From Trichosphaerium sp. ATCC 40318 (lineage: Eukaryota > Protista > Tubulinea), in assembly GCA_038496445.1 (NCBI GenBank), contig JALMLS010000062.1, forward strand, positions 124,001 to 188,000: a DNA stretch of 64,000 bases. Direction: 5' to 3'. The notes below the pieces were generated by a model. That model was not told the origin of the DNA and searched no databases. It saw only the letters and a list, made by a program, of their open reading frames with translations. Position numbers and translations under genes: made by a program. This document shows, in pieces, positions 12,046 through 54,342 of this stretch (position 1 is the stretch's first letter; each line of letters begins with the position of its first letter).

Positions 12046-13615
12046 TTATTGAGATGCACACAAATCATATTTTGCGTTTGGGAATACGACGTATCCGTAT
12101 GACTGAGGTTTTACAGTAAACGAAGAACCTGCGCTCACTAAAGGTGTAATTGTAGGTAAATTATCGCCATTCATTTTGAGCAGATTACCATTGAGATACA
12201 TGTCTCTAGATAATAGTTCCTTTGATGAGAAAAAATAATCGTTTCTTGTTTCAGTTCCCACTAGCCCTTCAATTGTTACTTCAACACTTTCGCTAGGATT
12301 ATTATTAAGTACAGCAAAAGCTACACTTCCTGGAGCTACCAAACCGCAATGAGCATAGATGTGGAAGTCATCAGAAGGGACCAACTTCAAACCAAGAACA
12401 CGTGGTCCCATAAACTTTTTCCATAAAAGTCCTGTGTAATAATCTGGGTTCGGCTCAAATGTGTTTGTGTCAACAAGCTCATAGTGACAACCAACAAAAC
12501 TCTGTCTATTAAAAGCGGCATGACCAAGGTTAGATAATTGACCAAGAGCGTCAAGGTAGTAAAAGCCATCTGAAAATGTGTTTGAAATGTTTGGAAGTCC
12601 GCCTCCATTATGAGGACCACCTTCGCCTAGCCAAACTGGTATTGGTGGTTTATGTTTATCAGCTATAGCTTTCATACTTTTACCTTGTGTTAAAGTCTGC
12701 TCTATGAAACCAGGAGCTGGTTTCTCATCGTAAGAGTGGTAGACCAAATCGTCCAAATATCTAAACATTGAGTCAGAGAAATGGGCTCCATGAAAAGTAT
12801 GTGGAAGTTTTCAGGTTCGACGTACCCGAGTGTAGCATTGATAAATGTATCCATCCATGATAAGTGAGTGAACTGGCTCATGCCAGGGCAAGGACCCATC
12901 AATCTAGGCTGTGATACGCGTCCAGCCCAAGTAACTTCAATAATTTCTTTACACTTCTTATACGCCGCAACATAGTTTGTAAAGTGCTCTGTGCCAAGGG
13001 AAGGTTCCATTTCTTCACCTAATTCTATACCGTACATTGTATATCCTTGTTTAGCTGTGTATTTTAAGAACGCTTCTGGGTTTGTATAGTCCCAAGCAGT
13101 CTCGCCAATCACTGGATAAGATAACCCAAAAATCAACTTCAAATTTGTTTCCTTTACGAAATCGAGTACCTCAACCCACCTTGTCATGTTCAAGCAATAT
13201 TTTGGGTCTGGGCACGTGACATTCTCATTTACTAGATACGTTATTTTCTTATCTAAAGAGCCACCTATACGAAGGAAACCAGGTGAAAACGCTTTTGCCA
13301 AGTTTTTCAGCTTTTGGCTCTTTAAATCGAGTGTAAGTATTCCAGCAGTTCCCCAACCGTTTGGTTTACATCCCTAACTGAGTTTTAGGACACATTTATT
13401 TGGATTCGTTTAACGAAATACTTACGCCGTCTTTAGGCCACCAGTCCAGCGTAAACGAAGCGAATTCTAATCAAAACCGTTTAAAAAAAATGAGTTAAAA
13501 ACTAGAACCCACCTGGCAACGTGTTTGCGATAACTTGGCCTACAGAGACAGATACTTGAGGAGAGCAATAAATTAACGCTAACAACGCAAGAAATGCCAA
13601 TACACGAAGCGTCAT
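12046..13615 (-). CDS. Glycoside hydrolase family 79 (heparanase-like), secreted
   Basis: Signal peptide, FASFTLDWW, LRIGGSL, IELGEE, VWLGEGG, YLDALG, RQSFVG, PNPDYYTGLLWKKFMG and YAHC motifs. The frame change at ~12760-12825 is explained by a GT-AG intron. Confidence 0.9.
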
Positions 13616-21301: not shown

Positions 21302-22000
21302 ATGAAAAAACAAAAAACAAAAAAGAGCTTGTCTTCTTTTAAGGTAACTAGTATACTTGATCTCCCTTGTGAGATTCAAAGGTATATATGCATTTTCAAT
21401 GTTGAAGCGTTCACAAAATATCATACACTCTCAAGAAGAGCAGCAATCAATACACATTTCGATGAAGGATTACAAAAGAAGGGAAAATGGATATCTTGGT
21501 ATAAAAGTGGAAAGGTAAAGGCTCATCAATATTGTACTGGTCCAAGTAACATATGGCACGAGAGTGGAAATATAATGATGCAGTATACAATGGTTGATGG
21601 TATAAAAAATGGCGACCAGAAACAGTGGTACAAAAGTGGTCAACTCTGGGTACAAAGTATGTGGGTTGATGGTAAACGACATGGTGAAGTTAAAGAGTGG
21701 TATAAGAGTGGTCAGATCAAAGCACAAATCATGTTTGTTGATGGTAAACAACATGGTGAAGTAAAAGAGTGGTATGAGAATGGACAACTCAAGATACAAA
21801 GTGTGTGGGTAGATGGTAAAAAGAATGGTGAATACAAAATGTGGCATATGAATGGACAACTCAGGATACAAAGCATGTGGGTTGATGATAGAAAGAATGG
21901 TGAATATAAACAGTGGCATTCAAATGGACAACTCAAGGTACAAAGAGTATATGGTAATGGAACGCAAAAAGGTGAACAATCAAAGAACACGAGCTGTTAA
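21302..22000 (+). CDS. F-box-like + MORN-variant (YwqK-like) repeat protein, intronless
   Basis: ILDLPCEIQRYI followed by 24-aa repeats of the form WYxxGQLxxxxxxVDGKxxGExKx. Confidence 0.85.
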   Translation: MKKQKTKKSLSSFKVTSILDLPCEIQRYICIFNVEAFTKYHTLSRRAAINTHFDEGLQKKGKWISWYKSGKVKAHQYCTGPSNIWHESGNIMMQYTMVDGIKNGDQKQWYKSGQLWVQSMWVDGKRHGEVKEWYKSGQIKAQIMFVDGKQHGEVKEWYENGQLKIQSVWVDGKKNGEYKMWHMNGQLRIQSMWVDDRKNGEYKQWHSNGQLKVQRVYGNGTQKGEQSKNTSC

Positions 22001-27577: not shown

Positions 27578-28840
27578 ATGAATCTACTTGACATTCCCAT
27601 TGAGTTACTGCTTGATATCTACGAGAAAGACGATGAAGTGTTTATAAAGCTTCCATTGCTTTCAAAACAAACTGCAATGGTTACTAGATATGATAACGAT
27701 ATGAAAAAGCATCGTAAATGGATACAACGAAAAGGAGATTTCATCCTGCGAAAACAAGGCTGGCGAAATGGTAAACTACACGGAAAGTCAAAGAGATTCT
27801 TTCAGAACAGTAAACAACTTTACGAACAAACTGATTATGTAAACGGTTTAAGAGAAGGAAGCCACAAGGTATGGTTCGCAAATGGTGTACTTACAGAGCA
27901 TTCACATTACTCCAATGGTAAACTTGATGGAGAATACAAGAGCTATTCTGAGAAAGGTTTATTGTATGGTAGTTGTGTTTATATCAAGGGTAAACGTGAA
28001 GGTGAGTACAACTTGTATTCTGACACAGGTTGCTTGGTAAGACAGTATCATTATGCTTATGGTATGCGAAATGGAGTGTACTGCAGCTGGTATGAAGATT
28101 GGTGGGAAAAGGAGAGTTCCGCTGAGAGGAAATTGAAAGAAAAGTGGTATTATGTTGATGATATACGTGAGGGAGAGTATAACAAGTGGCATAGAACTGG
28201 TGAACTTGAAAAACGTAGTCGTTATATCAATGGGAAACGACAAGGAAAGTCAACAGAGTGGCACAAAAACGGCCAAGTGAAGAAAAAGGGTCGTTTTATT
28301 GATGACTTAAAAGAAGGTAAATGCAAGGAATGGCTTAGCACTGGACAGTTGGTAAAGTGTTATCATTATCAAAAGGGAAAACTTGAAGGAGATTACAAAG
28401 AATGGTATAAGAACGGTAAATTGAAGGAGCAATATAACAATACACAAGAACAACGTAATGGAGATTACAAGAAATGGTATGAGAGTGGTCAACTTGAACA
28501 GAAGTGTTGTTATAGTTATGGAAGACGTGATGGACAGTATACTGAGTGGTATGAGAGCGGTGTTGTGCGTGTTAAGTGTGGTTATAAAAACTATGAAGCT
28601 CCTGAAGATACAAAACATGGAAAGTACATGAAGTGGTATGAAAGCGGACAATTGTGGAAAAGGTGTCGTTATGATATTGGCTACAAAAGCGGTAAGTGTG
28701 AGATATGGCGAGAAAATGGTCAGATAGCGGAAGAGCGTATGTATCGTAATGGACATCTTCATGGTACTTGTGTACAATGGGATGAAGATGGTAAAATGGA
28801 GTCAGTAACCGAATTCGAGCATGGTGAAGTATTGGGATGA
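27578..28840 (+). CDS. F-box-like + MORN-variant repeat protein, intronless, 420 aa
   Basis: MNLLDIPIELLLDI followed by about 14 repeats of G..K.WY.xG.L....Y..G. Confidence 0.9.
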   Translation: MNLLDIPIELLLDIYEKDDEVFIKLPLLSKQTAMVTRYDNDMKKHRKWIQRKGDFILRKQGWRNGKLHGKSKRFFQNSKQLYEQTDYVNGLREGSHKVWFANGVLTEHSHYSNGKLDGEYKSYSEKGLLYGSCVYIKGKREGEYNLYSDTGCLVRQYHYAYGMRNGVYCSWYEDWWEKESSAERKLKEKWYYVDDIREGEYNKWHRTGELEKRSRYINGKRQGKSTEWHKNGQVKKKGRFIDDLKEGKCKEWLSTGQLVKCYHYQKGKLEGDYKEWYKNGKLKEQYNNTQEQRNGDYKKWYESGQLEQKCCYSYGRRDGQYTEWYESGVVRVKCGYKNYEAPEDTKHGKYMKWYESGQLWKRCRYDIGYKSGKCEIWRENGQIAEERMYRNGHLHGTCVQWDEDGKMESVTEFEHGEVLG

Positions 28841-33929: not shown

Positions 33930-34136
33930 TTTTTAACGGTTTTTGATGGTTAAGTGCACGTGATAAAAGTAGAGAATAAGTACCAGTCATTGTCTTTTAA
34001 GTTGGTATGGACAATTTAAAGTCAACACTTGGACAGTGAAAGCACTGAACGACACTTTATTACTAAACTGACGTGGTAACTTGAAGAAACTGATAGTGCA
34101 ACTTTACGCTATGAACAAGTTGTGCTGTTGTGTTTA

Positions 34137-36025
34137 TTAGATTGTAATGAGTACAAGAATGATGATCGAAATAACGTTGGCAATGATACGGGTTGTAGTA
34201 CTTGGAGGAGCAGCAGTACCTCCCGTTGGAGAATCAGTAGTCGTTGAATTACCTCCAGTTGGTACAGTTGTATTTGACATGCTTGTTGGCGACTCTACAG
34301 CCATTGGTGCTTGTGGTTCTTGGGTCGGAGCGTCAGTTGGAGGTGGAGGGCAAAACCATGGATCATTTTCAATGACAAGAAGAGATGTTGTGATATTTCC
34401 GCCTAGTGGCAATCGTTCTGTTTTAGCCGTAACCTAAGATATATCCCGTTAGCATATTTTGTATGTATCGCAGGTAAATAATGTACGTACTATTCCAAAC
34501 CCACAAGGAGGTACAGATGCAAAGGCAACGCCTGGATATGTAGCAGCATACGAGTTGTCATATTCATTCTCTGTTACATTGCCATCACTTGAGATGACTA
34601 CAACATGAGGTGCACTGTCGTTATCATGAACGTATGATACAATAAATTCGCTTATTGGAGTAAATCCAGTTGTTAGGGAATAGCTTGAAACGACATGCTC
34701 ATTTGTGATGTTGTATTTTGCGTGAACTGTAAAGTTTCCATTTTCTACACAATTAATCGAGAAAATGACAAGTCTTAGAGTATTAACAGAAAGATCATCA
34801 GCTAATCTAAGTCCATATAATAGACCAAATTGTTCTGACACATTATTATACACAAGTTTCATAATTGCAGAAGTTTTTCCATCACCTTCATCAACTAACA
34901 CAGCATCTTCAAAAACCTGTTGCAAAAATAGATGTCAGCTTAATTAATACTTGTTGACGTACTCTCAAGCCTTGTGTCATCTCTACTGCAGAGACATGTA
35001 TTTGACCTGTTCCGTCTCTTATCGATTCCCTTACAGCCACCAGCATACATGTGATTCTCCAGCGGCCGCATCACTTCCGTCTGTGCGTAGCATGGTTACT
35101 GACATTCAACAAAAAGTTAGTTGAATATCAATCGAGATCTATACTCGTACATGGATCACTCGCGTCTGGCAGTATCTGACCAGTTTTAGGGTTGATAAAA
35201 ACAGGTTGTAAGGTGTATTGTTGCAAAGCAATGTAAAATTGTACAACAGGTTCGTAAATAAAGCCACCTGCTAGAGCGGGACTCATAGGCAAAGTAATAT
35301 TCTCAGATACGTAAAAGAAAGGCTGTAATATAAGTTAGCAACAAAATTACTAGTACAAGAATGAAACAAAGTACGTACCGGAGATGCTGTATCGTTAAAA
35401 TGAATAAGACGAATTTCGCACTGTGTCATGGGGGTTCCACGTTTTTTAAAGGGGGTAAACACAATGTTCGTGTCGCAAGCCAATATTGCAAACTCATTAT
35501 CTCCGTATATAACTCCGACAGGACTGTATTCTCCTCCTAATGGGTTAATAGTAAACGTTGTTGCGTTTCCTGTTGCAATATCTAAAAAAAAAGATGAGTT
35601 GTTGATTTAAGAACGTCACGTGATTTTTTTATGTTGCCAATGTTATCTTTTAGTTTATGACAAAGAGCGCACCTTGAGGGCTACCTATTACAATAGAGTA
35701 ACCACCTGCTTCTCGATAATAAGCACGCTTGATTGGACCCTGGGTTGGTGTTATATCCTTGTCTATCGTTACTTCTGAAACAACAATAACTGTTTGCCCG
35801 AAACCTTGTATGTCTCCAACAGCAACATGTGGGTGCCCAATATCTTCATTTCTTGAGCTGTTGAGTAGAGGCTCTACGTATAGATCTCGGAGGTCGTTCC
35901 ATTGATTAAAACCTTTTGCAGCGTACACTACAGTATGTTAAAATTAGCTATTAATTCCTAGCCTTGTTAAACGTGCCCGAAAAGATGATGGCAATAAAGC
36001 AAAGAAATATTGATGATTTTATCAT
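34137..36025 (-). CDS. Surface-protein family copy 1 (type A body): signal peptide, beta-rich ectodomain, Pro/Thr stalk, terminal hydrophobic (GPI-like) tail
   Basis: MIKSSIFLCFIAIIFS..GFNQWNDLRDLYVEPLL ... ENDPWFCPPPPT..IIANVISIIILVLITI*. Confidence 0.85.
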
Positions 36026-36189
36026 AGAGGTGTTGATGCGAGGGTTAGAGCTTATGATTTATGGTTAGTAACTGCACAGTATCGTATTCAAAGGGAGAGA
36101 TTTGGGGAGATTAAAGAATTTAAAGAACACCTAAACTACTTTTACAACATTGTAAAGTAATGCGTATTTCGATGTATAGTTAGCCTACT

Positions 36190-39135
36190 ACTAATTAGTT
36201 TATCAACTCCGAGCAATGGATATTTTTACTACTGATTCTACAGCCTATTATTATTGTAAACACGGTAATCTTTACGTGCAGCTTTGCATTTTGTGAATTC
36301 TGAGAGTTGACAAGGGAATTAACTCTGTGTAGCTCTAATATTATTTATAACTTCTATATACAAGTACATACAGAATGTGGATAGGCGTAATAAAGTAATA
36401 GGGGCGAGACATCATAGGAACCAATACAGGTAAAAAAACGAAAAAAGAAAGCAAAAAAAAAGAAGAAGAAAAAAGAAGTTAATGTGATACACAAATCACA
36501 GATAGAATAAAGTAGAACATTGAATGTTGTTACTTCCTTGCTCACGTGATAATCCAAATTTATATTATTCTTTCAACATAAATGAGCAAACTCACACAAC
36601 CTTTACAATTATTAAACAATTTTTAAACGCCAGAGTAGCTATGAGCAAGTTGTACTTGTGTTTATTAGATTGTAATGAGTACAAACACGATGATTGCAAC
36701 AATATTAGCAATGATACGGGTTGTAGTACTTGGAGGAGCAATATTACCTCCCGTTGGAGAAACAGGCATATCAGTAGTCGTTGAATTACCTCCAGTTGGT
36801 ACAGTTGTATTTGACATGCCTGTTGGCGACTCTACAGCCGTTGGTGCTTGTGGTTCTTGGGTTGGAGCATCGGTTGGGGCCTCGGTTGGAGGAGGCTCGG
36901 TTGGAGGCTCGGTTGGAGGTGGTGGGCAAAACCATGGATCATTTTCAATGACAATAAGAGATGTTGTGATATTTCTGAATAGTGGCAATCGTTCTGTTCT
37001 AGCCGCAACCTAGTATTCTTTAGTATCTATGTGGCTCGCGTTTGAATAATGTACTATTCCAAACCCACAAGGAGGTACAGATGCAAAGGCAACATCTGGA
37101 TAAATAGCAGCATACGAGTTGTCATAATCATTCTCTGTTACAGATCCATCACTTGAGATGACTACAACATGAGGTGCACTGTCGTTATCATGAACGTATG
37201 ATACAATAAATTCGCTTGTTGGATTAAATCCAGTTGTTAGGGAATAGCTTGAAACAACATGCTCATTTGTGATGTTGTATTTTGCGTGAACTGTAAAGTT
37301 TCCATTTTCTACACAATTAATCGAGAAAATGACAAGTCTTAGAGTATTAACAGAAAGATTATCAGCTAATCTAACTCCATATAATAGACCAAATTGTTCT
37401 GATACATCATTATAAGCAAGTTTCATAAGTGAAGAAGCTTTTCCATCACCTTCATCAACTAACACAGCATCTTCAAAAACCTGTTGCAAAAATAGATGTC
37501 AGAGCTTAATTAATACTAGTTGACGTACTCTCGAGCCTTGTGTTATCTCTACTGCAGAGACACGTATTTGACCTGTTCCGAATCTTATCAATTCCTTTAA
37601 AGCCACAACAATACATGATCCCCCAAGGGCCGCATCACTTCCGTCTGTGCGTAGCATGGTTGCTGACATTCAAAAGTTAGTTGAGTATCAATCGAGATCT
37701 ATACTCGTACGTGGATCACCCGCGTCTATCAGCTGACCCATTGTAGGGTTGACAAAAACAGGTTGTAAGGTGTGTTGTTGTAAAGCAATGTATGATTGTG
37801 CAAGAGGTACGTAAACAAAGCCACCTGCTAGAGTGGAACTCAGAGGCAAAGTAATATTCTCAGATACGTAAAAGAAAGGCTGTAACATAAGTTAGCAACA
37901 AAATTACTAGTACAAGAAGCAACAAATACGTACCGGAGATGCCGTATCATTAAAGTGAACAAGACGAATTTCGCAATGTGTATTGGGACCCTCCTGTTTT
38001 TTAAAGCCGACCAACACAATTTTCGTGTCGCAAGCCAATATTGCAAACTCATTATCTCCGTATATAACTCCGACAGGGCCGTATTCTGCTCCTAATGGGT
38101 TAACAGTAAACGTTGTTGCGTTTCCTGTTGCAATATCTAAAAAAAAGATGAGTTTTGTTGAGTTAAGAACGTCACGTGATTTTTTTTAATGTTGCCAATG
38201 TTATCTTTTAGTTTATAACAAAGAGCGCACCTTGAGGGCTACCTATTACAACAGAGTAACCACCTGTTTCTCGAAAAGCGCGCTTGTTTGGACCCTGGGT
38301 TGTCTCCTTGTCTATCTTTACTTCTGAAACAACAATAACTGTTTGCCCGAAACCTTGTATGTCTCCAACAGCAACATGTGGGTGCCCAATATCTTCATTT
38401 CTTGAGCTGTTGAGTAGAGGCTCTACATAGAGATCTCGGAGGTCGTTCCATTGATTAAAACCTTTTGCAGCGTACACTACAGTGTGTTAAAATAGAATTA
38501 GCTATTAATTCCTAGCCTTGTTAAACGTGTACCCGAAAAGATGATGGCAATAAAGCAAAGAAATATTGATGATTTTATCATAGAGGTGTTGATGCGAGGG
38601 TAGAGCTTATGATTTATGGTTAGTAACTGCACAGCATAGTATTCAAAGGGAGAGATTTGGGAGTCTACTAATTAGTTTATCAACTCCGAGCAATGGATAT
38701 TTTTACAACTGATTCTACAGCCTATTATTATTGTAAACACGGAAATCTTTACGTGCAGCTTTGCATTTTGTGAATTCTGACTGTTGAACTCCATGTAGCT
38801 ATAGTTGTCAACTTCTTCTTGATGTTCACTTCTATATACAAGTACAAACAGAATGTGGCTAGGCGTAATAAAGTAATAGGGCGAGACATCATAGGAACCA
38901 ATACAGGTAAAAAAAACGAAAAAAGAAAGCAAAAAAAAAGAAGAAGAAAAAAGAAGTTAATGTGATACACAAATCACAGATAGAATAAAGTAGAACATTG
39001 AATGTTGTTACTTTCTTGCTCACGTGATAATCCAAATTTATATTATTCTTTCAACATAAATGAGCAACCTTTACAATTAAAAACAATTATGCAATTTTTA
39101 AACGCAAGAGCAAGCAAGTTGTACTTTAGTGTTTA
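36190..39135. repeat. Near-identical duplicated intergenic spacers (36190-36660 and 38665-39135) marking a ~2.5-kb tandem duplication unit
   Basis: Both spacers carry long shared runs such as GGCGAGACATCATAGGAACCAATACAGG...GTGATACACAAATCACAGATAGAATAAAGTAGAACATTG. Confidence 0.9.
36665..38581 (-). CDS. Surface-protein family copy 2 (type A body)
   Basis: Same exon structure as copy 1, with extra PPTE stalk repeats. Confidence 0.85.
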
Positions 39136-40004
39136 TTAGATTGTAATGAGTACAAACATGATGATTGCAACATTAGCAATGATACGGGTAGTACTTGGAG
39201 GAGCAATATTACCTCCCATTGGAGAAACAGGCACCTCCCAAATCCACAACGATGTACAAACGTGATATCTGGGTGTTGCGAGGTAGCCACTATCATATTC
39301 TTGCTCAGCTACAGTTCCATTTAGCTGAGATGAATGCAATATGTATCATTATCGTGAACGTAGGCAACAATAAAAGCGCTACGAAAGGCTGTTTAAAACA
39401 GTGCGAAATAAAAACATCACCAAAAAGCGTACTGGAGAAGCTGTGTCGTTAAAATGAACGAGACGCACTTCGCAATGTATCATGGGGAAGCCACGCTTGG
39501 CAAATATAGCATTCCTATCAAGTCAGTATCATCTCCATGCAGAACTCCTACAGGGAAAATAGCACCAGGTCTAATAGTTGCGTTTCCTGCAGCAATATCT
39601 TCAAAAAATCAGTTTTTTGATGAAACGTGATTTTGTTATTAATTTGATCTATTACGTACCTTCGTGGCTACCCAATACAATACACTACCCACCACTAGTT
39701 TGAAGCGCTTGAGAACGCTTAATTGGTGGTGGTGGAAGTATTTTCATATCTGTCTTGAGCTCTGAAACAACAATAACTGTTTGCCCGAAACCTTAACAGC
39801 AACATAAGGGCGCCCAATATTCTCGTTGTAAGTGCTGTTGAGTAGAGGCTCTACATAGAGATCTCGGAGGTCGGCCCACTGATTAAAACCTTTTGCAGCG
39901 CACACTACACGTGTTAAAATTATATCAAGAGGTTAGCGGTGTTACAAACAACGTAGCCGAAAGATGAAGGCAAAGAAGCAAATGATAATTGATAATTTAA
40001 TCAT
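39136..40004 (-). pseudogene. Surface-protein family copy 3 (type B), collapsed pseudogene
   Basis: About 870 bp versus ~1850 bp for intact copies. It has multiple internal deletions (e.g. GTATGTCTCC missing at ~39794), an in-frame TAG (GG*CIVLGS) and a damaged first donor. Confidence 0.85.
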
Positions 40005-40578
40005 GGGTACGTGTATTTGCAGGTACGTTCTGAAATATGGGTTATAACTACATTATAGTGTTCAAAAAGGGAGAGAAAGAGATGAAAGAGCACACTAAGT
40101 ACAGAAGCAAAACTTCAACTCCAACTCCGAACAATGATCTTTTTTCTACGTTTGATTCTGTGACCTAAACCATTGCTAACAGGAATCTTTGTACGAATAG
40201 CTCGTATTTGTATTACATGAATTCCGACTATTGACATGGGAATTAATTAAGTAATCAATACAATCGCAAATATAAATCAGCTTTTCACGGTTCTTCTTCA
40301 CTTCCACAAGTACATACTACTATATTTCAATTAGGAAAACATCCCTATTATCTCGGTTTGTTTGTTGTTTTTGCTGACTAGTGCTTTGACAGATAAAAGG
40401 GCTGGTAGACCTAAAGTAAGGTTTAATATTAATGCACTGCGAAATAAAGAGTTCTTTGCTATGTTGTAAAAGTAGTAGTTTAGGTGTTCTTTAATCTCCT
40501 TAATCTCTCCCTTTTGATAACTATACTGTGTAGTTACAAACCATAGTGTTAAGTACGCACCTACAAATACACGTATCC

Positions 40579-42426
40579 ATGATTAAATTATCAATTATCA
40601 TTTGCTTCTTTGCCTTCATCTTTTCGGGTATGTCGGTTGTTGTAACAATTCCGCAACCTTTTATTCTAATTTTAACATTCTACAGCGTACGCTGCAAAGG
40701 GTTTTAATCAGTGGGCCGACCTCCGAGATCTCTATGTAGAGCCTCTACTCAACAGCACTTACAACGAGAATATTGGGCACCCTTATGTTGCTGTTGGAGA
40801 CATACAAGGTTTCGGGCAAACAGTTATTATTGTTTCAGAGCTCAAGAAAGAGATTAAATTTCCGCCACCTCCATCAAAGCGCTCTCAAGCACCTCAAATC
40901 AATGATGGGTACTCTATCGTACTAGGGAGCCATAATGGTAAGCAATAAGTAAAAAGATTAAAAAAAATCACGTGACATTGTTTATGCTTAAAACTCTGAT
41001 TTTTTTTTAGATATTGCTGCAGGAAACGCAACAACCTTCACTGTTAGGCCTGCTGGCGCTCTTTACCCCGTCGGAGTTCTACATGGAGATAACGAGTTCG
41101 CAATATTGGCTTGTGATAGGAACTTTGTGATTAAGCGTGGCTACCCAATGATATACTGCGAAGTGCGTCTCGTTCATTTTAACGACACAGCTTCACCGGT
41201 ACACTTTTTGATGTTGATTTGTTTTTATTTCTAACTGTTTTAAACAGCCTTTCTTTTACGTATCTGAGGCTATTGCGATAATTGGGGATAGCCCTGCAAC
41301 GGGTGGATTTATTTACGAACCTGTTTCAACTTTATACATTGTGTTGCATCTACAGTCGTTAATTCCTGTTGTTATCAACTCAAAAAATGGTCAAATAGAT
41401 ATGGGTGATCCAGGTAAGATATGCAAATTGACTACTTAAAAAATAACTTTTTTTTTATAGCAACCATGTCATTGGCAGAGGGAAGCACTATGGCTCTTGG
41501 TGGAACTTGCGTTGTAGTAGCATTTGAGGAATCGACCGCGGGTGGTACAGGAGAAGTACTTGTTACAGCAACAGAGATAATAAGTGACTTGAACGTACGA
41601 CAACAAATGAAGCTTTATTTGTAACTAATTTTCTCTACAGGCTTTCGAAGACACTGTGTTACTCGATGTATCACCAGAAAAGATTTATGATGTTATGGAC
41701 ATCGCATACGATGCTGCTTCAGGTCAATATGGTCTGCTATATGGATCCATTGTAGGAGGAAAACCTACTACCACACGATTAAGACTTGTACGGTTTACTG
41801 TTGATTGCGTGGAAAATGGAACTTTTACAATTCATGGAAAGCACAATATCTCAGATGAGCATGTCGTTTCAACCTACTCAATAACAAATGGATACTCTCC
41901 AAATAGCGCTTTTATTGTTGTCTATGTTCACGATAACGATACCGAAACTCATGTTGCAGTCATATCAGCTAATGGAACTGTAACTGAGCAAGAATATGAT
42001 AGTGGCTACCTCGCAACACATCCAGATATCTCGTTTGTATCTGTACCTCCTTGTGGATTTGGAATAGTACGTACTCTTTATAAAAGAGCCAAAGAGTTTA
42101 TATACTAAGCTTGATATTAGGTAGCAACCCAAAGTGAAAGAATGCCAGAAGACTGCAATACAACGTCATCTCTTATTGTCATTGAAAACGATCCATGGTT
42201 TTGTCCTCCTCCTCCAACTGACGCTCCGACCCAAGAACCACAAGCACCAATGGCTGTAGAGTCACCAACAGGCATGTCAAATACAACTGTACCAACTGGA
42301 GGTAATTCAACGACTACTGATATGCCTGTTTCTCCAACGGGAGGTACTGTTGCTCCTCCAAGTACTACAACCCGTGTCATTGCTAATGTTGTTGCAATCA
42401 TCGTGTTTGTACTCATCACAATCTAA
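40579..42426 (+). CDS. Surface-protein family copy 4 (type B body), inverted orientation
   Basis: MIKLSIIICFFAFIFS..GFNQWADLRDLYVEPLL ... VIANVVAIIVFVLITI*. Confidence 0.85.
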
Positions 42427-42804
42427 TAAACACAACAGACAACTTGGTAATAGCTTCTTTTACTTTTTGAAAGCGATCGTAACTAGCACGTTCTCAAAAG
42501 ACAGTTGCTCGTTATGTAGAGTGTGAAACTATGTCAAGTATTTGAAAGGGTCACCACTGGCTTGTACTTGATTTAACCTAAACCATCGCTAGCAGTTTTA
42601 CAGATAGACATTGACATGGATTTAAAAGTCGCACTATAAATATGAGTTCTCTTCATTTCCATAGGTAGATACTAATTTAAGTCTGAGAACAGTTATAATA
42701 AAGTACTATGAAAGGACCAGCAATAACAAATTAAATGAAGAAAATAAGAACAGAAAAACACAAAAAGTAGATCAACAAAACTATGACAAAGTTGTTAATG
42801 TTTA

Positions 42805-44670
42805 TTAGATTGTAATGAGTACAAGAATGATGATCGAAATAACGTTGGCAATGATACGGGTTGTAGTACTTGGTGGAGCAGCAGTACCTCCCGTTGGAGA
42901 AACAGGCATATCAGTAGTCGTTGAATTACCTCCAGTCGGTACAGTTGTATTTGACATGCCTGTTGGTGACTCTACAGCCATTGGTGCTTGTGGTTCTTGG
43001 GTCGGAGCGTCAGTTGGAGGAGGAGGGCAAAACCATGGATCATTTTCAATGACAATAAGAGATGACGTTGTATTGCAGTCTTCTGGCATTCTTTCACTTT
43101 GGGTTGCTACCTAATATCAAGCTTTAGTATAAACTCTTTCGCTTTTTTATAAAGAGTACGTACTATTCCAAATCCACAAGGAGGTACAGATACAAACGAG
43201 ATATCTGGATGTGTTGCGAGGTAGCCACTATCATATTCTTGCTCGGTTACAGTTCCGTTAGCTGATATGACTGCAACATGAGTTTCGGTATCATTATCGT
43301 GAACATAGGCAACAATAAAAGCGCTATTTGGAGAGTATCCATTTGTTATTGAGTAGGTTGAAACGACATGCTCATCTGAGATATTGTGCTTTCCATGAAT
43401 TGTAAAAGTTCCATTTTCCACGCAATCAACAGTAAACCGTACAAGTCTTAATCGTGTGGTAGAAGGTTTTACCCCAACTATGGATCCATACAGCAGACCA
43501 TATTGACCTGAAGCAGCATCGTATGCGATGTCCATAACATTAGAAATTTCTTCAGGTGATACATCGAGTAGCACAGAGTCTTCGAAAGCCTGTAGAGAAA
43601 ATTAGTTACAAATAAAGCTTCATTTGTTGGCGTACGTTCAAGTCACTTATTATCTCTGTTGCTGTAACAAGTATTTCTCCTGTGGCATCCATACTCGATT
43701 CTTTATAAGCTACTACAACGCAAGTTCCACCAAGAGCCATAGTACTTCCGTCTGCGGATGACATGGTTGCTATAAAAAAACATGTTAGCTTTAATTTTTA
43801 CAGTTTTCCAAACAAATCTTACCTGGATCACCCATATCTGTTTGACCATTTTTTGAGTTGATAATAACAGGAAGTAGAGAGTATTCGGTCAACGCAACGT
43901 ATAAAGTTGAAATAGGTTCGTAAATAAAGCCACCTGACACAACATCACCCATAGGTAACGTAATAGCCTCAGATACGTAAAAGAAAGGCTGTTTAAAATA
44001 GTTAGAAATAAAAACAAGGCAACATCACAAAGCGGCGTACTGGAGAAGCTGTGTCGTTAAAATGAACGAGACGCATTTCACACTGTGACCCGTATCCTCG
44101 CTTGACATACATGGTATTCTTCTCACAAGCCAATATTGCGAACTCGTTATCTCCATGTAGAACTCCGACAGGGTAAAGAGCGCCACCAGGTCTAACAGTG
44201 AACGTTGTTGCGTTTCCTGCAGCAATATCTAAGAAAAGATCAGGTTTTTGATGAAAAGAAACAATGTCACGTGATATTTTTTTAATTTGTAGATCTATTA
44301 CGTACCTTCGTGGCTTCCCAGTACGATAGAGTACCCATCATTCATTTGAGGTACTTGGGAGCGCTTTGCTGGAGGTGGCGGGGTCGGCTTTTTAATGTCT
44401 GTCTTGAGTTCTGAAACAACAATAACTGTTTGCCCGAAACCTTGTATGTCTCCAACAGCAACATAAGGACGCCCAATATTCTCGTTGTAAGTGCTGTTGA
44501 GTAGAGGCTCTACATAGAGATCTCGGAGGTCGGCCCATTGATTAAAACCCTTTGCAGCGTACGCTGTAGAATGTTAAAATTAGAACAAAAGGTTGCGGAA
44601 TTGTTACAACAAACAACGTACCCGAAAAGATGAAGGCAAAGAAGCAAATGATAATTGATAATTTAATCAT
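42805..44670 (-). CDS. Surface-protein family copy 5 (type B body)
   Basis: Near-identical to copy 4 in the 3' exons; the tail matches copy 1. Confidence 0.85.
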
Positions 44671-53359: not shown

Positions 53360-54342
53360 TTGTATTATTGCCTAACGGCAGGTTTAGATCAACCACCTTC
53401 AAAGCCTGGGCGTTACCTTCTCGGTGGGAGTACTAGTAGTAATCTATTAGACATACCAAAGGATATTCAACGGTATCTAGTACTTTCAATGAAGAAACGT
53501 TTTATAAGTTTCATTCACTCTCAAAACTCGCTGCAACCAACACTCACTTCAATGATAAACTCGAGAAAAATGGAGTGTGGATGGAGTGGTGCGATAGTGG
53601 TAAACTTCTATCACAATACGTTATGATTGATGGAAAGAAGAACGGAGTCTACAAAGAGTGGTATAAAAATGGACAACTTGAGGTTCAGTGCACGTATGTT
53701 GAAGATAAAGAAAACGGTGAGCTTAGACTATGGCATAAAAATGGGCAACTTCAGATGCAGTGTACAAAAGTTGATAATGAAAGTAATGGTATGCACATAG
53801 AGTGGTATGAGAATGGGCAACTCTTTAAAAATACTACTACTTTTGAAGGTAGACCTAATGGTGAGTATAATGAGTGGTACAAGAATGGACAACTTAAGAC
53901 ACAAACCATAGAAATCAATAAAAAGAAACACGGTGAATTGAAAGAGTGGCATGAGAATGGACAAATAAAACTGAAGTGTTTGTTTGTTGAAGGCAAAAAA
54001 AATGGAGAATTCAATAAGTGGTACGACAATGGACGACTGTGCATGCAGTGCATGTTTGTTGATGATAAGATAGAAGGTGAATACAAAAAGTGGCATGAAA
54101 ACGGACAACTGTGGGTTCTTTGTAACTACATATGTGGTAAGCTAAATGGCACTGGTAAAGGGTGGCATAAAAATGGACAGCGAGAAGTAAGCGTTAGTCA
54201 TGTAGACGGCAAAATAGTAGGTGAGTACAAGGAGTGGTATAATAATGGACAGCTAAAATTGGAGTGTATGTATGTTGATGGTAAAGAAAATGGTGAGGAA
54301 AAGAAGTGGTGCAGAAATGGACAACGGATGTTGTTTTGGTAA
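53360..54342 (+). pseudogene. F-box-like + MORN-variant repeat gene with a 1-nt frameshift at ~53480
   Basis: NLLDIPKDIQRYL lies in one frame. The continuation homologous to the 21302 gene (TFNEETFYKFHSLSKLAATNTHF) lies in the frame of ORF 53575-54342. No in-frame ATG is evident upstream. Confidence 0.7.

Follow-up and report, generated by a model that had tools for sequence, protein, structure and literature searches.

We consider it likely that a five-copy gene cluster of Trichosphaerium sp. ATCC 40318, located at positions 34137-44670 of the 64,000-nucleotide stretch of DNA analysed here (the window), belongs to a Trichosphaerium-only family of probable GPI-anchored surface glycoproteins, in which the C-terminal tails have been swapped between copies by ordinary conversion. 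The host is a free-living marine amoebozoan about whose surface, life cycle and feeding little is understood, and the family is apparently specific to it and previously undescribed. The gene model, a six-copy subfamily, at least 27 family loci and a likely propeller-type head are newly defined here, and make the family a candidate for studies of adhesion or of prey and substrate recognition.

Organisation of the cluster and its mosaic of bodies and tails

Repeat finding and a five-way DNA alignment divided the cluster into five homologous units in the orientation - - - + -, as an earlier note on this DNA had described. Two body types are present, A in copies 1 and 2 and B in copies 3, 4 and 5 (in copy 3 for its 5' part only), and the division of the ectodomains of copies 1 and 2 from those of copies 4 and 5, which the same note had proposed, is clearly seen in exon 6, where identity is 95-96% within a body type and 68-69% between A and B. 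We derived a seven-exon gene model, which for copy 5 is confirmed by a transcript peptide (P0001). By this model copies 2, 4 and 5 are intact, and the two remaining copies of the window (1 and 3) are decayed. The cluster lies at 158-169 kb on a 739-kb contig, and an intact sixth copy with a T1 tail (one of two tail types, T1 and T2) is located at 43 kb on the same contig, about 120 kb from the cluster.

Copy 2 (36665-38581, minus strand) combines an A body with a T2 tail and encodes 523 aa in exons 38581-38533, 38476-38231, 38136-37934, 37879-37711, 37662-37529, 37480-37055 and 37009-36665; within the last of these, a 12-nt tandem repeat present in 4.8 copies (36860-36919, minus strand) encodes a Pro/Thr/Glu expansion that adds 13 residues to the stalk. 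Copy 4 (40579-42426, plus strand) has a B body and a T2 tail and encodes 506 aa (exons 40579-40627, 40686-40937, 41011-41198, 41248-41413, 41461-41594, 41641-42066 and 42121-42426); it stands head-to-head with copy 3 and tail-to-tail with copy 5. Copy 5 (42805-44670, minus strand), which is transcribed, has a B body and a T1 tail and encodes 508 aa (exons 44670-44622, 44563-44306, 44228-44041, 43988-43823, 43769-43636, 43589-43164 and 43110-42805). The inverted arms formed by copies 4 and 5 are 94-95% identical, with indels and numerous coding differences. Copy 3 (39136-40004, minus strand; T2 tail) is a pseudogene, as had been noted earlier: its B-type 5' part has lost the intron-1 donor and carries a 10-nt deletion in exon 2, and large deletions have removed most of exon 4, the whole of exon 5, the start of exon 6 and the stalk.

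Copy 1 (34137-36025, minus strand), with an A body and a T1 tail, had been taken as intact, and here our analysis differs. Its exons (36025-35977, 35927-35673, 35581-35379, 35322-35151, 35098-34963, 34916-34491 and 34433-34137) sum to 1538 nt, which is not a multiple of 3, and exon 5 contains a 2-nt insertion (35052-35053, minus strand) that shifts the frame and leads to a stop at 35031-35033. The insertion is absent from the other full-length copies (2, 4, 5 and 6), and the exon-5 profile matches copy 1 in two frames. In addition, the donor of intron 1 is GC, not GT, and omega between copies 1 and 2 is 0.88. Judged from its sequence, copy 1 is probably the second pseudogene of the cluster.

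The earlier proposal that tails assort independently of bodies was borne out by site-by-site comparison. Over the last 77 nt, copies 1 and 5 are 98.7% identical (1 of 77 positions differs) and copies 2 and 4 are 96.1% identical, whereas identity across the tail groups is only 84-87%. Between the start codon and the linker in exon 7, 297 of 348 informative sites separate A from B, whereas all 9 informative sites of the final 77 nt separate copies 2 and 4 from copies 1, 5 and 6 (Fisher p 9e-16 for the body-site versus tail-site split). No single tree accommodates body and tail. Recombination tests on the aligned copies likewise supported a mosaic (PHI-type test p <= 0.001; run-length permutation for copies 1 and 5, p 2e-4). 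In copy 1 the homogenised part of exon 7, comprising the stalk and the T1 tail, spans 34137-34387 (minus strand; tail at 34137-34213), and the equivalent stretches are 36665-36964 in copy 2, 42166-42426 in copy 4 and 42805-43065 in copy 5. The 3' flanks group copies 1, 2 and 4 against copies 5 and 6.

Protein architecture, membrane anchor and head fold

The product of an intact gene contains, in order, a signal peptide, a head of ~390 residues, a short Cys-containing linker, a Pro/Thr/Ser-rich mucin-like stalk of ~50 residues and a hydrophobic end. By inspection, every copy begins with Met-Ile-Lys, followed by 16-19 hydrophobic residues and a small-x-small site (A-Y-A in P0001 and V-Y-A in copy 2). 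P0001 has ten N-x-S/T sequons, and a protein of its type has only 8 Cys. In the six copies on the cluster's contig the C-terminal hydrophobic run is 16 residues long and ends at the stop codon; these six copies and 14 of the 15 distant paralogs read to the stop have a hydrophobic C-terminus with no cytoplasmic residues after it, in agreement with the earlier observation that a cytoplasmic tail is lacking. Located 8-12 residues upstream of the run is G-G-T-A-A or G-G-N-I-A, and at the same spot in distant paralogs S-G-S-D or S-D-A (all by eye). The transamidase subunits Gpi16 and Gaa1 are encoded in the genome by multi-exon genes (contigs C214 and C69), with Pfam matches above the curated cut-offs. 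Taken on these sequence features, the products are probable GPI-anchored surface proteins. Such a protein would enter the ER and be N-glycosylated on its head, its C-terminal signal would be exchanged for a GPI anchor by the genome-encoded transamidase, and the stalk would present the head above the membrane as a component of the cell coat, in a role that we infer to be most likely adhesion or ligand/glycan binding.

We considered whether the product could instead be a type-I membrane protein held by its terminal hydrophobic helix, with no GPI anchor. AlphaFold places a helix at residues 489-507, which would suit such a protein. However, this arrangement is unlikely, as a run of only 16 residues that ends at the stop lacks cytoplasmic and stop-transfer residues, and the small residues (G, A, S, N) 8-12 positions upstream of the run and the presence of the transamidase genes also argue against it.

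Two folds only were made, from alignments of exons 2 and 6 and of exons 3 and 5, each representing part of the head; a full-length MAFFT alignment of P0001 with the exon fragments of paralogs was misaligned and discarded, and only certain exon combinations align. In the AlphaFold models, residues 275-395 form beta-meander blades (pLDDT 85-95). The ten strands between residues 275 and 411 are arranged as 4+4+2, with four-stranded antiparallel blades side by side, and the top matches to this region are all beta-propellers. The exon-3 region is also beta (pLDDT 62-86), the N-terminal two thirds of the head are modelled at low confidence, and the partial models contain no closed ring. Foldseek matched paramyxovirus HN (probability 1.0, E 9e-4), and VIA gave Z scores of 8.8-9.6 to propeller proteins, with TM below 0.5 and no propeller family singled out. 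The confidently modelled part of the head superposes on the propeller blades of the HN/sialidase fold, the fucose lectins AAL and PLL, FG-GAP integrin heads and semaphorin 7A, the last of which carries a propeller head on a GPI anchor. Unlike the known propeller families, the Trichosphaerium head has no family sequence motif and no blade repeat: Pfam scans of 45 family fragments contained no Asp-box, FG-GAP, Kelch or WD signature, and hhalign between exon profiles detected no blade-to-blade sequence repeat. Overall, the models indicate that the head is likely all-beta and at least partly beta-propeller-like, the propeller assignment being based on about a third of it. A giant-virus origin was considered separately and rejected, since the viral and Atlas fold searches gave generic propellers and no specific match.

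At the sequence level, searches were conducted exon by exon, with database proteins as the only full-length queries. With the full-length protein, Pfam returned no family even at an E-value threshold of 10, exon-by-exon scans were also empty, and neither single-sequence and profile searches of PDB sequences nor a search of IMG/VR gave a relative. A word search with full-length P0001 matched nothing but P0001, and an ESM Atlas feature search with exon 6 gave only unnamed clusters with low recognition. An exhaustive profile search with exon 6 recovered the gene's own cluster and otherwise only, and weakly, a repetitive bacterial protein (P0002; E 1.4e-4, four stretches), which we took as a chance match. 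The ectodomain, in which no known family had been recognised earlier, thus appears to lie outside all described families, no homologue having been found by Pfam, PDB-sequence or database searches.

The order of parts is the same as in the fungal GPI adhesins Als, Flo and Epa (signal peptide, beta-rich head, Ser/Thr/Pro stalk and GPI signal). Those adhesins have a ligand-binding head and a heavily glycosylated stalk of variable repeat length, and their genes, like the present ones, are clustered, with pseudogenes and recombination between paralogs. In contrast to them, the propeller-like Trichosphaerium head contains no PA14, Ig-like or Flo11 domain and has no sequence or fold relation to theirs, Trichosphaerium is an amoebozoan and lacks a cell wall, and its cluster lies away from the contig ends.

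Family size, transcription and the question of antigenic variation

A genome-wide copy count, which the earlier note had proposed, extended the family beyond the sixth copy on the contig to at least 27 loci (exon 6 gave 27 matches, spread over 17 or more contigs). Exons 2, 3 and 6 were present in all 19 loci that were fetched and an exon-7 match in 16 of them; stalk and hydrophobic end were both found in 15 of these 16, the exception (L018) being without the hydrophobic end. An overall omega of 0.4-0.5 points to purifying selection on these sequences, and omega is near 1 in exons 4-5. Transcription of copy 5 is documented by P0001, an MMETSP0405 peptide (508 aa, taxid 498012) that contains the translations of all seven exons, in order and exact; the original transcript assembly contained only a 209-aa fragment of this copy. 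In a collection of 15 billion proteins, which includes two assemblies of the strain ATCC 40318 transcriptome, a nine-member family profile found the copy-5 cluster and nothing else. A further transcript (P0004) carries a copy-2 type stalk, a hint that copy 5 is not the only one transcribed.

The earlier note had interpreted the cluster as paralogs that recombine and encode GPI-like surface proteins, and had likened it to variant-antigen or recognition arrays. The first part of this interpretation is supported and the analogy is not, as A and B copies exchange sequence only in the last exon. In a programmed system of the trypanosome VSG or ciliate serotype type, a cassette array would shuffle modules and one member would be expressed at once. 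If this were true, the members (at least 27) would form a repertoire of alternative GPI-anchored coats, essentially one per cell or life-cycle stage, pseudogenes and neighbouring copies would feed sequence into the expressed genes by conversion, and the family would be an amoebozoan counterpart of the ciliate serotype antigens, with copy 5 the only member with transcripts in the sequenced culture. Compatible with this are the size of the family and its pseudogenes as possible donors, the demonstrable conversion tracts, some of them in B-type ectodomain exons, the omega near 1 in exons 4-5 and the finding of copy 5 alone in the protein collection; a transcript record of one member could mean restricted expression, which an ordinary gene family does not predict. 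Free-living ciliates, moreover, run such systems with GPI-anchored antigens and can use mutually exclusive expression (PMC4235209). Nevertheless, we regard the programmed system as very unlikely, and the one-coat repertoire as equally improbable. What A and B copies have exchanged is only the stalk and an unexposed tail, the genes are under purifying selection, the locus is internal to its contig, two of the five copies in the window are decayed and the organism is free-living. The shortness of the original copy-5 fragment suggests that other members may be too weakly expressed for assembly, and P0004 points away from expression of a single member. Nothing resembling an expression site or a recombination signal was seen at the locus.

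The ciliate serotype (immobilisation) antigens and trypanosome VSG are likewise GPI-anchored protein families of protists, encoded by multiple genes and subject to conversion. They differ from the Trichosphaerium family in structure, being Cys-rich periodic repeats or helical bundles, and in an exclusive expression that relies on a subtelomeric position or on expression sites, whereas the latter has 8 Cys, a beta-rich head and an internal locus, and gives no sign of exclusive expression or of conversion altering exposed parts between types. A precedent for gene conversion in amoebozoan surface-lectin gene families is provided by the Gal/GalNAc lectin families of Entamoeba (lgl and igl), which are surface proteins, some of them GPI-anchored, with conversion between paralogs (PMC3125142); these have no sequence similarity to the present family, and Entamoeba is a parasite under host immune pressure, unlike the free-living Trichosphaerium.

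Origin of the tail mosaic

The sequence comparisons support recombination between paralogs, by gene conversion or unequal exchange, as the best explanation of the tail mosaic. Conversion between A and B copies is supported by their synonymous divergence, which is 0.25 in exon 7 (range of dS 0.24-0.28) and about 0.68 elsewhere, in exons 2-6. The mosaic would have arisen by ordinary ectopic conversion, or by unequal crossing-over, between adjoining direct and inverted copies. Between A and B, sequence was exchanged only in the last exon, within the low-complexity stalk (15 variable among 171 aligned sites) and the hydrophobic tail; exchange would be concentrated there, where the copies are most similar. 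Probably, T2 was the ancestral tail of the A lineage and T1 that of the B lineage; later, a short T1 tract would have passed into copy 1, and T2 together with an A-type 3' flank into copy 4. Copy 3 has the look of a B/A recombinant and would have decayed afterwards, and the DNA 3' of it is 97-99% identical to that 3' of copy 2. As the difference between T1 and T2 falls within the C-terminal signal that would be lost on GPI attachment (or in the membrane, if the anchor were a transmembrane one), a swap would yield no new exposed surface; the exchange of tails is thus best regarded as a by-product of concerted evolution and not as a generator of diversity, because the tail would be absent from the exposed mature protein.

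Could the similarity of exon 7 reflect selective conservation, with the two tail types being old alleles sorted by duplication and no conversion at all? Linker, stalk and hydrophobic end are indeed an architecture common to the whole family. However, selection on the protein is a poor match to the nearly threefold lower synonymous divergence of exon 7 and to a low-complexity stalk that varies freely in length and sequence among distant paralogs. Neither does it sit well with body (297 sites) and tail (9 of 9 sites) that fit no single tree, or with tails of copies 1 and 5 that differ at one position in 77 while dS of their bodies is near 0.7, and we give this explanation very little probability. 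That the tail combinations are absent from the organism and were created in assembly, by stitched haplotypes or foldback reads, is barely credible: the assembly is a 642-contig draft of a multinucleate amoeba, some family members have identical copies on separate contigs and the inverted pair of copies 4 and 5 has a foldback-like look, but an independent Illumina transcript peptide equals copy 5 (B body and T1 tail) over 508 of 508 residues, the arms of that pair are too divergent, the T1 tail recurs on the remote copy 6, and exon-7 DNA occurs at exactly six places, every one on the cluster's contig.

Conversion between paralogs thus remains our preferred explanation, and the locus offers a clean textbook case of gene conversion limited to one exon, among paralogs in direct and inverted orientation, in which the mechanism is ordinary, opening none that is new, and the swapped module is not on display at the cell surface. 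Mosaicism is also evident within the B-type ectodomain, where copy 5 is like copy 4 across intron 1 to exon 2 (p 4e-4) and like copy 6 from exon 2 to exon 5 (p 0.002), a pattern that is the expected product of ordinary ectopic conversion among young paralogs.

Gene copies and gene model

Both repeat finding and a five-way alignment bore out the five homologous units, in the orientation - - - + -, that the earlier note had described at 34.1-44.7 kb of the window (G000:C12:124001-188000, part of a contig in a eukaryotic assembly of 70.3 Mb and ~37% GC; the published draft genome of Trichosphaerium sp. has 70.87 Mb and 37.69% GC; PMC10521059). From the five-way alignment of copies 1 to 5 (c1-c5) we derived a 7-exon model with short introns (about 46-97 nt) and donors mostly of the GTACGT type. 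Under this model c2 (523 aa), c4 (506 aa) and c5 (508 aa) are intact, the exons of each summing to a multiple of three with no internal stops. c3 is badly decayed: the donor of intron 1 is lost, exon 2 carries a 10-nt deletion, and all of exon 5, most of exon 4, the stalk and the start of exon 6 are missing. c1, previously taken as intact, has a 2-nt insertion in exon 5 (35052-35053), absent from the other four copies compared, which leads to a stop at 35031-35033. Because of this lesion, a GC rather than GT donor in its intron 1 and an omega of 0.88 for the c1-c2 pair (versus 0.4-0.5 in other pairs), c1 is probably a young pseudogene, which leaves c2, c4 and c5 as the intact ones among the five window copies. 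A sixth copy, c6 (locus L001; 515 aa, intact), lies ~120 kb upstream of the cluster on the same contig.

All six copies have the stop context TAATAAACA in common (34128-34139, 36656-36667, 39127-39138, 42424-42435 and 42796-42807 in the window, and near position 1600 of L001). It contains a double stop and an AATAAA hexamer, possibly a polyadenylation signal that overlaps the stop codon.

Mosaic of bodies and tails

The copies have two types of body, A (c1 and c2) and B (c4, c5, c6 and the 5' part of c3), and two types of tail (the last 77 nt of exon 7), T1 in c1, c5 and c6 and T2 in c2 and c4. From the start codon to the exon-7 linker 297 of 348 informative sites separate c1 and c2 from c4, c5 and c6 and only 2 of the 348 set c2 and c4 apart from the rest, whereas in the last 77 nt all nine informative sites separate c2 and c4 from c1, c5 and c6 (p 9e-16, Fisher's exact test), so that the tails do assort independently of body type, as had been claimed. 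A run-length permutation test (p 2e-4, for c1-c5 and also for c1-c6) and a PHI-type test (p <= 0.001) lend support. Of the 77 tail positions, one differs between c1 and c5, c3 carries a c2-type tail (97% identity), and 15 of 171 aligned stalk sites are variable. Compared by region, A (c1, c2) and B (c4, c5, c6) are 58-82% identical in exons 1-6, 46-76% in introns and 87-92% in exon 7. Synonymous divergence between them is 0.24-0.28 in exon 7 versus ~0.68 in exons 2-6, so that constraint on the protein does not by itself explain why exon 7 is so alike.

Beyond the stop codon the 3' flank is of one type in c1, c2 and c4 and of another in c5 and c6. The DNA downstream of c2 and c3 (36188-36592 and 38665-39070; repeats D12 and D14) is 97-99% identical, showing that the duplicated unit reaches well past the coding region; an A-rich low-complexity tract lies inside these segments. 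The B copies are mosaic among themselves: c5 is c4-like from intron 1 into exon 2 (p 4e-4) and c6-like from the end of exon 2 to exon 5 (p 0.002), and conversion thus also reaches the head-coding exons and acts over ~120 kb. In the stalk of c2 a 12-nt tandem repeat (4.8 copies, 36860-36919) adds 13 Pro/Thr/Glu residues, and a shorter insertion occurs there in c6, so that repeat slippage, in addition to conversion, makes the stalk vary in length.

Overall, site patterns, recombination tests and exon-7 synonymous divergence support gene conversion or unequal exchange as the source of the mosaic. In the simplest history the A lineage would have carried T2 and the B lineage T1 ancestrally; c1 would have received a short T1 tract ending near the stop codon and c4 T2 with an A-type flank, while c3 would be a B/A recombinant that decayed afterwards. 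Everything seen is accounted for by ectopic conversion of the ordinary sort, favoured in the exon where the copies are most alike and richest in repeats; amoebozoan surface-lectin genes offer a precedent (PMC3125142).

Transcripts, protein architecture and relatives

The only real match in an exhaustive exon-6 profile search was P0001, a 508-aa transcript peptide from the MMETSP0405 transcriptome (taxid 498012, Trichosphaerium sp. ATCC 40318). P0001 contains all seven c5 exon translations in order, which shows that c5 is transcribed and confirms its model, the combination of B body and tail T1 included, from independent RNA data. A second peptide, P0004 (MMETSP0405 Transcript_26469), which we compared with 36665-37009 and 42805-43110, combines the c5 body with a longer c2-type stalk and tail T1. 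Exon-7 DNA occurs at only six places in the assembly, all on contig C12, and as none of the six has this combination P0004 is either an allele that the assembly lacks or a de-novo assembly chimera formed via the common stalk sequence; whichever its origin, it suggests that c2-type stalk sequence is transcribed.

Full-length sequences used for searches and folds were database proteins only. P0001 begins with a hydrophobic N-terminus with a small-x-small cleavage site, followed by a head of ~390 residues with few cysteines and 7 of the protein's 10 N-x-S/T sequons, a linker with a Cys at its end and then a Pro run, and a stalk of ~50 residues, mostly Pro, Thr, Ser, Gly and Ala. It ends in a 16-residue hydrophobic run up to the stop codon, with small residues 8-12 positions upstream, and this C-terminus, as judged from its sequence, looks like a GPI-attachment signal. 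Genes for the transamidase subunits Gpi16 and Gaa1 are present in the genome; from these features we infer the GPI anchoring that the earlier note had put forward.

Of two alignments of P0001 that were folded, that with exon-2 and exon-6 rows gave ten beta strands (4+4+2) in residues 275-395 at pLDDT 85-95, and that with exon-3 and exon-5 rows gave beta strands in residues 110-176 at pLDDT 62-86. All structural neighbours of the confident part of the head were beta-propellers (paramyxovirus HN, sialidases, GH43 enzymes, WD40 proteins, fucose lectins and integrin heads), with a Foldseek probability of 1.0 (best E 9e-4), VIA Z up to 9.6 and Atlas TM < 0.5. With ~50 residues to a blade, there would be room in the head for roughly seven; as the blades are modelled in part and no blade-to-blade sequence repeat was detectable, we call the head propeller-like with moderate confidence only.

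No relative was found in Pfam (full-length protein, E up to 10; among 45 family fragments at E up to 1, no recurring weak family), PDB sequences, IMG/VR or a word search of 5.8 billion protein clusters, and a profile search of 1.84 billion representatives returned P0001's own cluster only. The family is thus new and, on these searches, apparently lineage-restricted. Its kind is a known one, in which clustered paralogs under concerted evolution encode a signal peptide, a beta-rich head, a mucin stalk and a GPI signal. The exon-6 profile matched 27 genomic places, several of them grouped in small clusters, on at least 17 contigs. All 19 loci fetched from these 27 have exons 2, 3 and 6, and 16 have an exon-7 match, with stalk and hydrophobic end in 15 of the 16 (the exception being L018); outside the C12 subfamily exons 4-5 are too divergent for recognition. 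Members with identical scores occur on different contigs (C80:259520-259876 and C182:6770-7123, with identical exon-7 translations; C7:377-727, C190:104406-104756 and C387:7239-7589), some at contig ends, and represent either haplotigs that were not collapsed or segmental duplications of very recent date.

The variant-antigen analogy and neighbouring genes

The observation in the earlier note was confirmed and is corrected in three respects (one more pseudogene, one more copy, more family members); its interpretation was supported in part. Out of at least 27 genomic loci the strain's public peptide sets contain the c5 cluster only, which leaves a small probability for a variant-antigen system, and exclusive expression of GPI-anchored antigens is known in free-living ciliates (PMC4235209); however, it is simpler to suppose that the family is weakly expressed, since the original transcript assembly had c5 only as a 209-aa fragment. 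The likening of the cluster to a variant-antigen cassette array is not supported: A-B exchange would make no new exposed surface, because the stalk is nearly identical across copies and the tail dimorphism lies inside the predicted GPI signal, whose cleavage would remove it (or inside the membrane, were the protein transmembrane), overall omega is 0.4-0.5 and near 1 only in exons 4-5, the organism is a free-living marine amoebozoan, the locus is internal to its contig, two of the five window copies are not intact, and ectopic conversion suffices.

The window holds a second locally repeated gene family, three long + strand open frames (21302-22000, 27578-28840 and 53575-54342) that match the MORN repeat variant family PF07661 (E 1e-26 to 1e-31). 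A - strand open frame at 12046-12768 has a marginal match (E 4e-5, just above the cut-off) with the final part of the glycosyl hydrolase family 79 N-terminal domain.
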